From positions 196,724-260,723 of IMG/VR virus record IMGVR_UViG_3300044213_000107: a stretch of DNA of 64,000 nt, one strand, 5' to 3'. The notes beneath the pieces were generated by a model. It was not told the origin of the DNA and made no database searches. It saw nothing but the letters and a program-made list of their open reading frames with translations. The position numbers and the translations under genes are program-made. How positions within the stretch are numbered: position 1 is the first letter of the stretch; each line of letters begins with the position of its first letter. Below are positions 2,214-25,291 of this stretch, piece by piece.

Positions 2214-2252
2214 CCAGCATCTGTAAAATGGTGCGCTTGGAGGGACTTGAAC
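2214..2252 (-). repeat. 39-bp direct repeat copy 2
   Basis: Matches 175-213; includes the 3' end of the intact tRNA-Ile2. Confidence 0.9.
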
Positions 2253-2305
2253 CCCCGACCAAGCGATTATGAGTCGCCTGCTCTGACCAACTGAGCTACA
2301 AGCGC
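2229..2305 (-). tRNA. tRNA-Ile2(CAU), lysidine type
   Basis: Anticodon arm GGCGACTCATAATCGCTT as in enterobacterial ileX; CCA. Confidence 0.8.
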
Positions 2306-2664: not shown

Positions 2665-2755
2665 ATATAAAAACACACTCTTATCAATATCCCAGCGGTC
2701 GACTCGGTTTAACAGGGCCCAACGTAGAGGGTCGGGCGAATGTGTTTTTATATGG
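2663..2755 (-). ncRNA. unassigned ~93-nt RNA closed by a 15-bp stem
   Basis: CCATATAAAAACACA ... TGTGTTTTTATATGG inverted repeat around a GC-rich core, between tRNA units. Confidence 0.55.
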
Positions 2756-2790
2756 TAGGAGCACGGGGATTTGAACCCTGAACCTATCAA
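2753..2790 (-). pseudogene. orphan tRNA 3' half (3' anticodon-stem strand, T arm, acceptor strand, CCA)
   Basis: Minus strand TTGATAGGTTCAGGGTTCAAATCCCCGTGCTCCTACCA; the HNH ORF lies where the 5' half would be. Confidence 0.75.
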
Positions 2791-3362
2791 TGACTGAGTA
2801 GTCGTTTTGCCCTGGCGTGGCTAGCACCCTTGTCAGGCAACCCAACACTTCTCAATGCTTCTGAAATAGTATTATGTTTCTTAACAGCCTCTAATAATAC
2901 TTCATCCGGAACAATTCTTTTTTTGTTATTTCTTCCTCGCCAAGTCTTAGTTTTTGAATGACAATTAGGACAAATACATTCTAAATTAGATCGGTCATTA
3001 TTTTTTGTATCACCGTCTTTATGCTCTAATTCTAAAACAATAGGATCACCCATCCATTCTGAAATTCCACAATGGTTACACTTATGACCTTGCTCTTCTA
3101 ATACCCGTCGCTTTCTATTCTCGCTACCTAATTTTTCAAAAGGTGTGGATTGGTATTTCTCTAATGCCCAAGCTGTTGTCTTGGCACTTCGTAATCTTAT
3201 TTCCTCGGTTGTAATTGGAGTTTTTCTAGTCCAACGACCGGCATTAGCAATACTTTTCTTCTTTTTGCTTTCTTCAGTAAACACTCTACTATTTGAACAT
3301 TTTCTAGAACAGAATGTTCCAGGCTTAGTATGTGCTGTATTACATTTAGGACAATTTTTCAT
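2787..3362 (-). CDS. HNH homing endonuclease with N-terminal Zn-finger
   Basis: CxxC..FCSRKC, then CNHC...LELEHKDGDTKNNDRSNLECICPNCH. Confidence 0.9.
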   Translation of the reverse strand: MKNCPKCNTAHTKPGTFCSRKCSNSRVFTEESKKKKSIANAGRWTRKTPITTEEIRLRSAKTTAWALEKYQSTPFEKLGSENRKRRVLEEQGHKCNHCGISEWMGDPIVLELEHKDGDTKNNDRSNLECICPNCHSKTKTWRGRNNKKRIVPDEVLLEAVKKHNTISEALRSVGLPDKGASHARAKRLLSH

Positions 3363-3426: not shown

Positions 3427-3500
3427 TGGTAGGCCCGGAGGGTACTGACCCCTCTTTTACGGATTAAAAGTCCGTTACTTCACCTTAAAGTTTCAAGCCC
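3427..3500 (-). tRNA. tRNA-Lys(UUU), non-canonical
   Basis: ACGGA-CTTTTAA-TCCGT; A8 instead of U8; T-loop GTCAGTA. Confidence 0.8.
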
Positions 3501-3505
3501 GTATG

Positions 3506-3580
3506 TGGTCCTTGCTCAGAGAATCGAACTCTGTTAGTCCGGGTAAGAGCCGGATACTTCGCCAGCAAAGTTTAGCAAGG
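3506..3580 (-). tRNA. tRNA-Lys(CUU)
   Basis: TCCGG-CTCTTAC-CCGGA; same A8 and ACTT/AAGT D-stem as its neighbour. Confidence 0.85.
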
Positions 3581-3589
3581 ATGGTTTGT

Positions 3590-3639
3590 ATTAACGAGTT
3601 CTTTAATGTCTTACAAACATATTAAAGAGTTCTTTAATG
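3590..3639. repeat. two 19-nt near-palindromic direct repeats
   Basis: ATTAACGAGTTCTTTAATG (3590-3608) and ATTAAAGAGTTCTTTAATG (3621-3639). Confidence 0.75.
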
Positions 3640-3676
3640 TGCCATCCCAGGACCAATACGGGGTCTTAGGATGACA

Positions 3677-3697
3677 CTACTGTTTACCTTGTTTCAT
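3677..3697 (-). CDS. six-codon leader ORF MKQGKQ
   Basis: AAAGGAA RBS, ATG AAA CAA GGT AAA CAG TAG, followed immediately by a 15-bp hairpin (3640-3676). Confidence 0.5.
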   Translation of the reverse strand: MKQGKQ

Positions 3698-3724
3698 GTC
3701 AAATTCCTTTGTGTTAAAAATGCT

Positions 3725-3753
3725 ATTATACAACTATCACAGCCAGTTGTCAA
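3725..3753 (-). promoter_or_regulatory. consensus sigma70 promoter
   Basis: TTGACA-N17-TATAAT. Confidence 0.85.
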
Positions 3754-3761
3754 CTGTTTTT

Positions 3762-3836
3762 TGGTACCCGGTGCTGGAATTGAACCAGCGACCCTTGCGT
3801 TATCAGCACAATGCTCTACCCCTGAGCTAACCGGGT
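3762..3836 (-). tRNA. tRNA-Ile(GAU)
   Basis: Loop CTGATAA. Confidence 0.92.
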
Positions 3837-5407: not shown

Positions 5408-5557
5408 TTATTCTTTAGTTTGTTCTTTGTGTTCTAGTAGTTTTTGTTGATATTGATCTTCAGTTAAACCATGCCAACCACAACACTTACCGTCTGGGCT
5501 ACGGCCACAACCGCATTTACCAATGTCTTCTGCATTTTCTTGTACTCTCATTTGCAT
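5408..5557 (-). CDS. 49-aa CDGSH-like (2Fe-2S or Zn) mini-protein, absent from the ORF track
   Basis: AAAGGAA RBS; MQMRVQENAEDIGKCGCGRSPDGKCCGWHGLTEDQYQQKLLEHKEQTKE. Confidence 0.7.
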   Translation of the reverse strand: MQMRVQENAEDIGKCGCGRSPDGKCCGWHGLTEDQYQQKLLEHKEQTKE

Positions 5558-5986: not shown

Positions 5987-5991
5987 AAATT

Positions 5992-6229
5992 CTCTATATG
6001 TAAACATACCTAAGGAACTCTTGAACAATATGGACTCTGCCGGCACCACGGGTTCGTCTCCCGATTGGGTTCATTCGTTATTACAGCCTACATGATCTGT
6101 CAGTACACTCGTACAGTATCTTGCGATCCGTAACTACCTTCATGTGCACTGCATACTCCGCCCCGGCGAGCTGTCCCCTTTGCAAGCACCTAACAGTATA
6201 GGTAACCTTTTGTACGTTTACATATAGAG
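5992..6229 (-). ncRNA. unassigned ~238-nt structured RNA
   Basis: 14-bp terminal stem CTCTATATGTAAAC/GTTTACATATAGAG, GC-rich interior, ATC-GCAA-GAT tetraloop hairpin. Confidence 0.6.
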
Positions 6230-6263
6230 GCTATTGTTTACAATAGCTTATATGTGATTAACT

Positions 6264-6524: not shown

Positions 6525-7310
6525 ATGAACACCTGTCAACAATGTACTTCATTATTTGCTCAAACTCCTGGAACGTACGGTAAATTTTGCTCTGTATCCT
6601 GTAGTAGTAAGTTTAATAATAAAATTAGACGCCAACAGACTACGGAAAACTATTTATTAAATCCAAAAGTTTGTAAAAATTGCAATTCAATCATAAATTA
6701 TTCTCAAAGAAAAAGTAATATTTTTTGTAGCCGATCCTGCGCCGCTGTGTTTAATAATGCCAAAAAAGATTGGACTAATATTAAAACTGGGCCGACACCT
6801 AAACAAAAGGCACCGAAATTAAAAAGAAAAGCGAGAACTAATACTATCCCAGATGCAGACGGACCATACACTATTATATACCTATGCACTTGCAAATTTA
6901 CTGGAAAAAAATGGTACTCCCCAACAGTTAAGACCATACACCCATCAACAATATCAACTAAAAAATTGTATTCTTATCAATGTAGATTTAACTTTGGTAT
7001 TAAGTCGTACCCTGAATGGTTTGCTTATGCATCAAATTTAATAAACACTAACGGCTGGTACTCAGCCTCTAATAGAGGTAATAATTTATCTGGATGTTCT
7101 CGTGATCATTTGTATTCAGTATCGGATGGATACAAAAACAATATAGATCCTAAAATAATATCTCATCCTGCAAACTGTGAGATAATTCCGCACAGGAAAA
7201 ATCAGAGTAAAAACAAGACTTCGTCGATTACATTAGAAGAACTAAAAGAAAGAATCAAAAAATTTAATCAAAAATATTTGGAGATGCCAGATGGGGTCGA
7301 GCCATCCTAG
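6525..7310 (+). CDS. Zn-finger repeat / HNH-like homing endonuclease
   Basis: Two CxxC..FCSxSC motifs; C-terminal SRDH...HPANCEIIPHRKNQSK; start moved to the ATG after TAAATA-N5. Confidence 0.75.
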   Translation: MNTCQQCTSLFAQTPGTYGKFCSVSCSSKFNNKIRRQQTTENYLLNPKVCKNCNSIINYSQRKSNIFCSRSCAAVFNNAKKDWTNIKTGPTPKQKAPKLKRKARTNTIPDADGPYTIIYLCTCKFTGKKWYSPTVKTIHPSTISTKKLYSYQCRFNFGIKSYPEWFAYASNLINTNGWYSASNRGNNLSGCSRDHLYSVSDGYKNNIDPKIISHPANCEIIPHRKNQSKNKTSSITLEELKERIKKFNQKYLEMPDGVEPS

Positions 7311-7352
7311 AAAGTTTTGCAGGCTTCCACCTAACCGCTCGGACATGGCATC
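7279..7352 (-). tRNA. tRNA-Cys(GCA), divergent T-loop
   Basis: Loop CTGCAAA, U discriminator; overlapped antisense by the HNH-like ORF end. Confidence 0.8.
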
Positions 7353-7497: not shown

Positions 7498-8679
7498 TTA
7501 TACTGGGAATACTTCCCTAAAATTTGTTTTTCTTATACGATCTAACATACCAATATATTCGTTAAATGTATTGATTAAGTTAGGATTGTGCACAGCATTT
7601 TCCAATGAGTTTATTGTAAATTTAATCGCTGATATATAGTTATATCGCAGATAATGCGTTAAAGGAATCTGAGATTTTAGTTCTTGCAAATCGAGAATAA
7701 ATTGATTTCTTTGTGCATCTGTTAACACTTCTATGTCTAAATATGGTTTAGACATTAATCTACCAACATTCACAGCATATGAGTTATCAACACAATATTG
7801 AATTAATGGTATCAACGCCCAGAAACTTGTATACTGTAGTGTATGGCCAATGGTAATAGGATTATTAGGCCATGTAGGATTAGGACGTGTGGCTAATTTT
7901 TTAATATTAGCATCTACGGTTGCCCACTCACTACCATATCTAACATATTCTGTATGTTGCTCGGTACCTTCTAAACTTACAACTATTGCAACAGATTTAA
8001 ATTTTGAAATACAATCGTATACTTCATCTGTTAATGTTGTACCGTTTGTGGTAACTGTTAAATTTAATTGCTCCGGATGCGGAATGCTTTTTAACATTGC
8101 AATAGCATTAGGAGTTATAAGTGGCTCGCCACCTGTTAAAAAAATATGTTCAACATTTTCTAATAGTCGAGGCTCCAGCTCTTGATATTCATCTGTTTCA
8201 AACCAATTTCTTTTTTGTATAAATTGATCATCATGAGTTAAGTGAACAAAATTTTTATATTGTTCTCTATTCATTTTTACTTCAGTTTCTATACTAGAAC
8301 TGCAATAAGGATTACACATTATACATTTTAAATTACAGTGATTGCCAAATTCAACATGTAAATGTTTTATGCCATAAGATTTATCTGGTGAAAAATCTTG
8401 TCTAATAAAATTTTCAAATGTGCGATTACCATTTATTCTGTACGACGATGATCCATTGTCTTCTTCGTCCCAACAACGACTACAACCTTCATGTCTTTGG
8501 CCATTGTCTAGTTCTTGACTAATTTTAATAACTTTTGTTTGTCGCCAACGATCAAATTGATCATATTTATCAACCAAATTACCATCTTTTATTTGATAAT
8601 TACAACAAGGTGTAAGTGTGCCGTCTGTGCGAATATTAACACCAATATGCGAATGTATACAAAATGTTTCTTGATTCAT
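7498..8679 (-). CDS. radical SAM protein with N-terminal SPASM/twitch-like Cys cluster
   Basis: CNLKCIMC, TGGEPL, TTNGT; N-terminal C..PCC..CxxC; start moved to MNQETFC. Confidence 0.88.
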   Translation of the reverse strand: MNQETFCIHSHIGVNIRTDGTLTPCCNYQIKDGNLVDKYDQFDRWRQTKVIKISQELDNGQRHEGCSRCWDEEDNGSSSYRINGNRTFENFIRQDFSPDKSYGIKHLHVEFGNHCNLKCIMCNPYCSSSIETEVKMNREQYKNFVHLTHDDQFIQKRNWFETDEYQELEPRLLENVEHIFLTGGEPLITPNAIAMLKSIPHPEQLNLTVTTNGTTLTDEVYDCISKFKSVAIVVSLEGTEQHTEYVRYGSEWATVDANIKKLATRPNPTWPNNPITIGHTLQYTSFWALIPLIQYCVDNSYAVNVGRLMSKPYLDIEVLTDAQRNQFILDLQELKSQIPLTHYLRYNYISAIKFTINSLENAVHNPNLINTFNEYIGMLDRIRKTNFREVFPV

Positions 8680-8709
8680 AGTGATATTTATATGCAACAT
8701 ATATTGTAA

Positions 8710-24118: not shown

Positions 24119-25291
24119 TCAAGTATTTATCAGTAGTTGGTAGAACTCAGGGTGTGTGTCTGCATATGAAGTGTCTGTTGCGGCATCATATTTTTTAACA
24201 TAAGATAAAAAATCAGCAGAACTAAAATTTTCATCTACAATAATGTAATCTGCCAAAAAATCCAGTTCTTTAATACCGGCAGTTTTATCTAATATGGCAG
24301 TTCTAAGACTAGAACTCACTTCTTGTGCCGAGCACTTTCCGAGTCCGGTGTTAAAAGGTGTAAAGTTTTTATAGACAGCAGGGAATTCTGTAGATAAAAA
24401 ATTACACAATTCTGAAATGTAAAATATATTATACAGGCTGTAGGTTATGTTAAAACATAATTCTACTCTAGGTCCACAATTGGCTTGGAACCATTTAATA
24501 TTTTCTACTACTTGATCCCATTTTGCGCCACGGCGTTGATATTCAAATCTTTTGCCGATGTCATCTATACTAAAAAATAATCTAACTTTTTCAACAGAAT
24601 TTAATATTTCTAAAAATTCCGGAGTCGGCAAGGTTGTGGCATTTGTAAATATCCAAATAGTTAGATCATCGTAGCTGCGATATTTTCCCATGTTTCGAAA
24701 AAATTCATAGTATGCCGGTTCCATAAATATTTCGCCGCCTTGCAGTTGTACCAATTTAAGACTTTTAAATAATGCAGGATCATCAATTACAGGACGGTCA
24801 TTCTTTTTATATTTCATTCCAGGCCAAATAAATCCCCAGTGTTTTTCGTACAAAGGAATCCAACTACTGCTGTTAAAAGGACCACATATAGCACAACTTA
24901 GATTACAAAGGTTTCCTAGATTTAAATCAATCCTTGTTAAAACTTCTACTTCACTAGTGCCGTGCTCTCTAATAGCATGATATCTTCCACTGGCGTGAGG
25001 ATTTATTTGATCTTGCTGATAACAATGGCCGCAACCAGGATGCTTTTCGTTATTTTTATTTTTTTCTCGTAGCTCAACAATAAATGGTGCAGAATTATAA
25101 TCATTGTAAATTTCATTGCTGCGAGAAATAAACATATCCTCACCTTTAGGCTTATAATCCCTATTAAAATAACAACAGGGTTTATAATCAAAGCGATCGT
25201 TCAGTTGATTTATGTATGCTCTATTCCATATCTCAGGGCAATAGACATCAGGATCTACATCGGTGTGATGTATCTTTATTGGATATTCCAT
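24119..25291 (-). CDS. radical SAM protein with SPASM/twitch-like N-terminus
   Basis: CNLSCAIC, QGGEIF, FTNAT; same architecture as 7498-8679. Confidence 0.88.
   Translation of the reverse strand: MEYPIKIHHTDVDPDVYCPEIWNRAYINQLNDRFDYKPCCYFNRDYKPKGEDMFISRSNEIYNDYNSAPFIVELREKNKNNEKHPGCGHCYQQDQINPHASGRYHAIREHGTSEVEVLTRIDLNLGNLCNLSCAICGPFNSSSWIPLYEKHWGFIWPGMKYKKNDRPVIDDPALFKSLKLVQLQGGEIFMEPAYYEFFRNMGKYRSYDDLTIWIFTNATTLPTPEFLEILNSVEKVRLFFSIDDIGKRFEYQRRGAKWDQVVENIKWFQANCGPRVELCFNITYSLYNIFYISELCNFLSTEFPAVYKNFTPFNTGLGKCSAQEVSSSLRTAILDKTAGIKELDFLADYIIVDENFSSADFLSYVKKYDAATDTSYADTHPEFYQLLINT

Follow-up and report, generated by a model that had tools for sequence, protein, structure and literature searches.

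Why would a phage that carries a large set of tRNA genes place a tiny ORF and a row of hairpins directly in front of its lysine tRNAs, and is this arrangement anything more than chance? The locus lies in a 64,000-nucleotide stretch (here called the window) of the 260-kb IMG/VR contig IMGVR_UViG_3300044213_000107, positions 196,724 to 260,723, a jumbo myovirus whose tail sheath is about 40% identical to that of Pseudomonas phage PA5oct. An earlier note, made from the sequence alone, had described a consensus promoter, an SD, a six-codon ORF, a hairpin and two palindromic repeats upstream of two tRNA-Lys genes. We confirmed that every element listed in that note is present, on the minus strand, with small corrections, as the hairpin begins with the G of the TAG stop codon and not with the base after it. 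The parts, in order on the minus strand, are as follows.

3836..3762, minus strand: tRNA-Ile(GAU).
3725..3753, minus strand: sigma-70-type promoter directly after tRNA-Ile(GAU), with -35 TTGACA (3753..3748), a 17-nt spacer and -10 TATAAT (3730..3725).
3709..3705, minus strand: SD, AAGGA, 7 nt before the ATG.
3696..3708, minus strand: segment Z, the ribosome-binding region (AGGA of the SD and UGACAU spanning the start codon), complementary to segment A.
3677..3697, minus strand: leader mini-ORF, ATG (3697..3695) AAA CAA GGT AAA CAG TAG (3679..3677), encoding MKQGKQ, with Lys AAA at codon 2 and at the penultimate codon.
3639..3677, minus strand: hairpin HP1, in which segment A is the 5′ arm (3677..3668), segment B is the 3′ arm (core GGGAUGG, 3648..3642) and an apical hairpin, GACC-loop-GGUC, persists in both of the alternative folds described below.
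3590..3640, minus strand: hairpin HP2, here tandemly duplicated as two 20-nt palindromic repeats (3640..3621 and 3609..3590).
3578..3584, minus strand: segment C, CCAU|CCU, the last four leader bases plus tRNA bases 1-3 (the RNase P cleavage site and the 5′ strand of the acceptor stem), complementary to B.
3506..3580, minus strand: tRNA-Lys(CUU), starting with the unusual C1 C2.
3427..3500, minus strand: tRNA-Lys(UUU), with a non-canonical T-loop (GUCAGUA).
3362..2787, minus strand: an HNH endonuclease gene.

The promoter is the only 12/12 match in the window, where 0.05 are expected by chance. HP1 has a 17-position stem with G.U pairs and one mismatch and folds at -21.8 kcal/mol, and the leader as a whole folds better than shuffled sequences (z = -3.4). 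The two repeats, ACATTAAAGAACTC[T/G]TTAAT, differ at one position and occur nowhere else in the window. The window's tRNA cluster is on the minus strand; ARAGORN called 24 tRNAs in the window and Rfam added more; tRNA-Lys(CUU) was called by both (46 bits in Rfam), whereas tRNA-Lys(UUU) was called only by Rfam (44 bits), as ARAGORN misses it because of its T-loop. Both thus score above the Rfam tRNA gathering score, as bacterial tRNA genes with a Lys anticodon. As the earlier note stated, no U-tract follows the hairpin, HP1 being followed by CAUUAAAG, and no terminator-like site was reported at 3578..3700, so that HP1 does not qualify as an intrinsic (Rho-independent) terminator.

We then asked whether the module is conserved, a point that had been set beforehand as a test of the idea. 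Comparison by blastn of the window region, and of a consensus-type member, with 50,697 cultured-phage records returned only tRNA matches or nothing, and exact-match scans with the window's own ORF-hairpin junction and with a neighboring radical-SAM protein returned only the source contig. However, homologues of this 510-aa radical-SAM protein led to related contigs whose Lys(CUU)-Lys(UUU) pair is preceded by the same module (members are denoted here by L numbers): relative L085 has the same promoter (aaaaaacagTTGACA-N17-TATAAT), MKRSGKP-TAG and the hairpin, while L081 has MKRGKR with the TAG replaced by a sense codon. A degenerate pattern taken from the hairpin loop and 3′ arm alone found 106 IMG/VR stretches, and an unrelated pattern taken from the ORF alone found at least 120. 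Of the 286 loci fetched, 196 carry the ORF-hairpin core, one copy each, and after deduplication 146 distinct versions have a downstream tRNA. The first downstream tRNA is Lys(CUU) in 138 and Lys(UUU) in 8, never that of another amino acid, and the Lys(CUU)-Lys(UUU) tandem follows the leader in 126 of 146. Of the 138 tRNA-Lys(CUU) genes behind the leader, 136 start with CC, and CCA is encoded in 146 of 146. A promoter-like site lies upstream in 46 of 145 members. The same hairpin pattern, scanned against one genome from each of 185,579 bacterial and archaeal species, gave 12 hits, all of them high-G+C coding-sequence chance matches without the ORF. Rfam scans of the window region and of member L099 returned only tRNA, and full-text literature searches, including for a leader peptide in front of a phage tRNA, found no description of such an element.

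The mini-ORF behaves as a translated ORF would, and a chance ORF was rejected. Among elements retrieved through the hairpin only, where the search placed no constraint on the ORF, 74 of 75 have an in-frame ATG-to-stop ORF and 73 of 74 have an SD within 16 nt. The 31 unique ORF sequences in that set have AAA (28) or AAG (3) at codon 2, CGT, CGA or CGC at codon 3 in 29 of 31, AAA at the penultimate codon in 31 of 31, and always CNN as the last codon. Lengths are 6, 7 or 9 codons, to which the wider set adds 8, so that the family peptide is M-K-R-x(1-4)-K-x and all length differences are whole codons. ATGAAR is in frame with the stop in 145 of 146. Lys stands at codon 2 and at the penultimate codon in all members, codons 2 and 3 show synonymous variation, and the penultimate AAA is invariant. 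The stop is TAG, abutting the hairpin, in 147 of 148 and TAA in 1, and the TAA case is followed by an extra G, so the G that opens HP1 is kept. By contrast, in 30 large ORFs of the window TAG is the stop once, Lys makes up 5% of codons, and Lys is never at codon 2. The small basic ORFs found upstream in relatives were suspected to be ArfA-like, but Pfam gave no hit.

These comparisons also bear on what the element could sense. The earlier note had proposed a Lys/Gln-sensing translational switch or, alternatively, a read-through signal. Sensing of Gln is not supported, as the CAA and CAG codons of the window are CGN, CTN or CCN in relatives. Read-through or recoding of the TAG, with the hairpin as stimulator, would fit the frame that stays open for 21 codons after TAG in the window, as the note stated. 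Nevertheless, the frame after the stop is open for 2 to 110 codons across the family and for only 3 codons in 40 of 146, HP1 and HP2 length differences are not multiples of three, no suppressor tRNA was found among the 24-26 tRNAs of the window, and large ORFs in the window read normally in code 11. Read-through is thus contradicted by the comparative data, and we consider it highly improbable.

The palindromic repeats could also suggest DNA operators, together with HP1, for a dimeric regulator that blocks transcription into the Lys tRNA genes, as in the window the two 18-bp palindromes are 31 bp apart, centre to centre, and lie on the same face of the helix. However, the motif occurs only at this site in the 260-kb contig, bringing evidence against a genome-wide operator. 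Most family members have a single HP2 (stop-to-tRNA distance 59-68 nt), and it is duplicated (distance 93-96 nt) in the window and in L025, L039, L043, L068, L074, L132 and L162. Stem sequences differ between classes while the hairpin is kept, and the G.U pairs in HP1, including an invariant U.G, and in some HP2 stems (for example, GUGAAAG...CUUUAC) work only in RNA of this strand. We regard the operator reading as very unlikely.

At the RNA level, four segments can pair in two exclusive ways. HP1 consists of a lower stem (A:B), a 2x2 internal loop and an upper stem with a highly conserved apical loop (CCCGUAU). RNAalifold on a MAFFT alignment recovered only HP1, namely its lower stem, in which one pair is seen as UA 56, AU 27 and CG 27, so the other pairings were tested in registers anchored on GGCAC and on the ARAGORN tRNA start rather than on alignment columns. 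The 3′ arm B (GGAUGG, GGUUGG, GGGUUGG and so on) is also complementary to C: cognate B:C duplexes average -10.8 kcal/mol against -7.9 kcal/mol for non-cognate pairs, and the observed cognate value is reached by 0 of 5000 permutations, although the pairing statistics do not correct for shared ancestry. In the fixed register, seven positions are paired in 68-99% of 85 unique sequences, with compensatory swaps at leader -1 (AU in 36, UA in 32) and at tRNA base 3 (GC in 33, UA in 18), and 86.9% of positions pair in register, against 31-62% when the register is shifted. Single lineages show matching double changes, as in L231 (GGGUAGG with CUUACCC), L256 (GUUGUG with CACAAC), L152 and L213. Some members keep only 4 bp of B:C (L209, L212, the GGUGG class), 19 of 136 have fewer than 5 bp in the fixed register, and the 8 elements that directly precede tRNA-Lys(UUU) lack a clear C segment. 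The 5′ arm A is in turn complementary to Z, with a family mean of -7.3 kcal/mol against -1.8 for a control upstream window and -4.3 for shuffled Z; in the window the Z:A duplex is -8.8 kcal/mol.

We compared the two states by forcing either set of pairs. In state I, Z:A forms and B:C closes HP2, so that the ribosome-binding site, the RNase P site and the first three bases of the acceptor stem of tRNA-Lys(CUU) would all be buried; in state II, HP1 and HP2 form, leaving the ribosome-binding site and the tRNA 5′ end free. The difference E(I) - E(II) is -0.7 +/- 3.8 kcal/mol for the leader alone and +1.0 +/- 4.5 kcal/mol with the tRNA included (n = 117), so the two states are near-isoenergetic across the family, although in the window itself state II is favored by 4.4 kcal/mol; the window fold with B:C is -18.2 kcal/mol. 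When 136 precursors were folded with a ribosome footprint imposed, a ribosome with the stop codon in the A site abolished HP1, B:C formed with at least 5 bp in 82%, and the acceptor stem was intact in 8%. With a ribosome stalled with the codon-2 AAA in the A site, HP1 was kept, B:C formed in 5%, and tRNA bases 1-3 were in the acceptor stem in 83%.

This balance argues against a simpler reading in which HP1 and HP2 are processing or stability signals of the tRNA precursor (for example, RNase III or RNase E sites, or a protective 5′ structure), the mini-ORF merely loads a ribosome that protects or exposes them, and B:C complementarity is a by-product of A and C being similar sequences. The conserved apical loop does suggest recognition by a protein or a tertiary contact, and there is a weak signal for pairing of that loop with the conserved UACG after HP2, but the excess over swapped pairs is small (-4.39 against -3.93 kcal/mol) and we do not claim a pseudoknot. 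However, B and C change together even where A and C differ in sequence (in the GGGUUGG class, A is GCUCUAG and C is CAACCC), the unique double changes in L231 and L256 point the same way, and a simple processing site would not need two global folds balanced to within about 1 kcal/mol. This alternative is therefore unlikely.

Taken together, we propose that the element is a ribosome-mediated, attenuator-like leader that gates maturation of the phage's own tRNA-Lys, a reading to which we assign a probability of about 0.58. In this model, transcripts start at the strong promoter or read through from upstream and carry a well-initiated ORF whose stop codon overlaps the first base pair of HP1. A ribosome that reads through to the stop would cover A, so that B pairs with C and the tRNA is held off, and with no translation at all Z:A and B:C would form, with the same result. 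A ribosome stalled at an AAA codon because charged tRNA-Lys(UUU) is scarce would mask Z but leave A free, so that HP1 forms, C is released, the tRNA folds and is processed, and the Lys tRNAs are replenished, with the tRNA-Lys(UUU) made from the same transcript closing the loop. Our analysis, which is computational and rests on uncultured contigs of unknown host, establishes the conservation of the parts, the signature of translation, the exclusive association with tRNA-Lys, the covarying alternative pairings and the near-equal energies of the two states, whereas we infer that the ORF is translated, that ribosome position selects the state, that B:C blocks RNase P or tRNA folding, and that Lys-tRNA scarcity is the signal. 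After termination HP1 could re-form, so a lasting block would need the Z:A lock or fast decay, both of which remain hypothetical. The directly gated tRNA reads AAG, whereas the sensing codons are AAA; only two non-adjacent Lys codons are present; and the model does not explain the conserved Arg codon 3 or the invariant C that starts the last codon. The interpretation in the earlier note is partly supported: a translational switch tied to Lys decoding that controls the Lys-tRNA sub-operon is supported by strong comparative evidence and by structural computation, not by experiment, while Gln sensing and read-through are not supported.

The same switch could instead respond to general translation status, with ribosome loading on the mini-ORF (ribosome availability, initiation or RF1-dependent termination capacity) setting the A:B versus B:C balance. 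AAA at codon 2 favors initiation and Lys at -2 favors termination, so these codons could be conserved for other reasons, the Lys and Arg codons being kept in this reading only because AAA at codon 2 boosts initiation and basic residues before the stop tune termination, and the strong SD, the UAG-U stop context and the strict stop-hairpin junction all fit optimized initiation and termination. Arg codon 3 is as conserved as the Lys codons, and relatives encode tmRNA and RF-1-domain proteins near their tRNA clusters. However, the element is found only in front of tRNA-Lys in phages that carry 20-40 other tRNAs, the penultimate Lys codon is never AAG among the 31 unique ORFs, and Lys at both positions is far above the 5% background, making this reading possible but unlikely.

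Why phages carry tRNA genes is a long-standing question, and recent work shows that phage tRNAs, tRNA-Lys in particular, can defeat tRNA-cleaving defense systems, although all of that work treats phage tRNAs as constitutively made. tRNA-Lys is the target of PARIS AriB, and a phage tRNA-Lys rescues infection (PMC11464382). PrrC is a tRNA-Lys anticodon nuclease. Scarcity of tRNA-Lys could follow cleavage by such a nuclease, giving a plausible reason why only the Lys tRNAs carry this leader, but the link to PrrC or PARIS, which the earlier note had also raised, remains an inference from what is known of those nucleases. More tentatively still, and less likely than not, phages could hold an on-demand lysine-tRNA supply that detects loss of host tRNA-Lys through stalling at AAA codons and then releases the tRNA-Lys(CUU)/tRNA-Lys(UUU) precursor for RNase P processing, which would be the first leader-peptide attenuator whose output is maturation of a tRNA and the first regulated phage tRNA counter-defense. 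A conserved leader coupling Lys decoding to release of the phage's own Lys tRNAs would mean that phages monitor the state of the host tRNA pool and respond to it, that ribosome-mediated attenuation extends from mRNAs to tRNA maturation, and that a compact, testable RNA device of about 120 nt becomes available for sensing tRNA availability. In this view, the C1-C2 start of these tRNA-Lys(CUU) genes and the use of the otherwise rare TAG stop are both explained as parts of the switch.

The closest known systems are the leader-peptide transcription attenuators of amino-acid biosynthesis operons (trpL, hisL, leuL, thrL, pheL, ilvL; Rfam Trp_leader, His_leader, Leu_leader, Thr_leader). As in these, a short leader ORF with its own SD carries codons for the amino acid whose tRNA would be sensed, and four segments (Z, A, B and C as 1 to 4) pair as 1:2 plus 3:4 against 2:3, with the ORF between 1 and 2 and the stop codon placed so that a terminating ribosome covers segment 2, while a ribosome stalled at the regulatory codons frees segment 2 to pair with 3. 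Here, however, the 3:4 helix is not an intrinsic terminator, as it is followed by the body of the tRNA and not by U residues, and it would sequester the 5′ end of a tRNA instead; the regulated genes are tRNAs, not enzymes, the regulatory codons are only two and not in tandem, segment 1 is the ribosome-binding site itself, and no Rfam leader family matches. The element would work like a leader-peptide attenuator but is not a member of any described family. Translational attenuation of ermC and cat-type resistance genes is likewise post-transcriptional, with the position of a ribosome on a short leader ORF rearranging hairpins to expose or hide a downstream site, but there the hidden site is the SD of the next ORF and stalling depends on a drug and the nascent peptide, whereas here the downstream gene is a tRNA, the hidden site is its 5′ end and RNase P site (leader -4..-1 plus tRNA bases 1-3), and the proposed stall is at Lys codons. 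T-box leaders upstream of aminoacyl-tRNA synthetase genes, including those of lysK/lysS, are also thought to sense the supply of a specific charged tRNA and to respond by raising expression of translation components, but they bind uncharged tRNA directly, without a ribosome or an ORF, and end in a terminator or an SD sequestor; no specifier loop or T-box sequence was found here, and no RF00230 match was returned even at E <= 10. In phage counter-defense, as with T5 tRNA-Lys against PARIS AriB (PMC11464382) and T4 repair of PrrC-cleaved tRNA-Lys (PMC10264068), a phage also supplies its own lysine tRNA, the isoacceptor family that host anticodon nucleases attack, although those cases concern nuclease-resistant tRNA sequences or repair enzymes, no regulatory leader is described for them, and the element is absent from the 50,697 cultured-phage records at blastn sensitivity. 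Lastly, the lambda bar minigenes are also very short phage ORFs with a strong SD whose translation interacts with tRNA pools, but they have 2-3 codons and act by peptidyl-tRNA drop-off, whereas the ORF described here has 6-9 codons, a fixed junction with a hairpin, and a downstream tRNA.

The features of the window that bear on this part of the text are the following.
3427-3500 (-), the tRNA-Lys(UUU) after the leader
3362..2787 (-), an HNH endonuclease gene, within 2753-3362 (-)
about 2790..2753 (-), what looks like the 3′ end of a canonical family-type tRNA-Lys(UUU)
2662-2756, a 57-nt insert flanked by an inverted repeat
5987-6235 (-), a candidate structured RNA
5408-5557 (-), a 49-aa Cys-rich ORF
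7282-7352 (-), a further tRNA
175-213, a tRNA fragment
637-2169, 7498-8700 and 24119-25291 (all -), three radical-SAM proteins

The tRNA-Lys(UUU) after the leader has a non-canonical T-arm (GAGGG-GUCAGUA-CCCUC), and ARAGORN misses it. The identical T-arm was found in 14 other IMG/VR contigs (L003-L016), in tRNAs with anticodons UUU, CUU, UUC and GCC and in unrelated contexts, suggesting a mobile or convergent tRNA scaffold. The HNH endonuclease gene is followed by the apparent 3′ end of a canonical tRNA-Lys(UUU) (...GGTTCAAATCCCCGTGCTCCTACCA), and an HNH plus variant-tRNA cassette seems to have replaced the 5′ part of the original gene. HNH homologues (67% and 50% identity) sit just downstream of the leader-tRNA-Lys unit in the loci L110 and L175. 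Directly after the Lys tRNA remnant, a 19-nt inverted repeat (CCATATAAAAACACA.../...TGTGTTTTTATATGG) flanks the 57-nt G+C-rich insert, and a similar repeat-flanked insert follows tRNA-Lys(UUU) in relatives (the related contigs L081, 5196-5275, and L085, 14746-14880).

Elsewhere in the window, a G+C-richer stretch of about 240 nt lies upstream of tRNA-Asp and is closed by a 24-nt inverted repeat. It folds far better than shuffles (-82.8 kcal/mol, z = -4.25) and matches no Rfam family (best hit IMES-3, 21.9 bits, below threshold). It is a candidate structured RNA. The 49-aa Cys-rich ORF, which has a good SD, lies between tRNA-Pro and tRNA-Ala inside the tRNA cluster and gave no Pfam hit. Rfam also finds a further tRNA at 7282-7352 (37.6 bits) that ARAGORN does not call, while positions 175-213 are a 95% copy of the stretch at 2214-2252 that covers the 3′ end of tRNA-Met (2229..2305) and the bases after it, that is, a tRNA fragment.

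In many family members, a conserved 42-aa basic, Trp-rich ORF (MANVKKGNLT..QWWKHLKDWKRVFWKSERQAQKRNINKGE) ends with a TGA one base before the mini-ORF ATG, suggesting translational coupling into the leader. We detected this ORF in the family loci L168 (6384-6512) and L166 (1253-1381) and in about 15 other loci, with no significant Pfam match, but it is absent from the window, where a promoter takes its place.

Three radical-SAM proteins are present in the window, and two of them bracket the tRNA cluster. The 510-aa protein has a weak, sub-threshold match to a B12-binding domain and has hundreds of homologues at 37-63% identity in metagenomes. Relatives (L085 3025-3409; RF-1 domain genes in the related contigs L080, L081 and L085) encode a tmRNA (tag ANDSQFALAA) and a 124-aa RF-1-domain (ArfB-like) protein next to their tRNA clusters, and these phages therefore carry ribosome-rescue parts as well.
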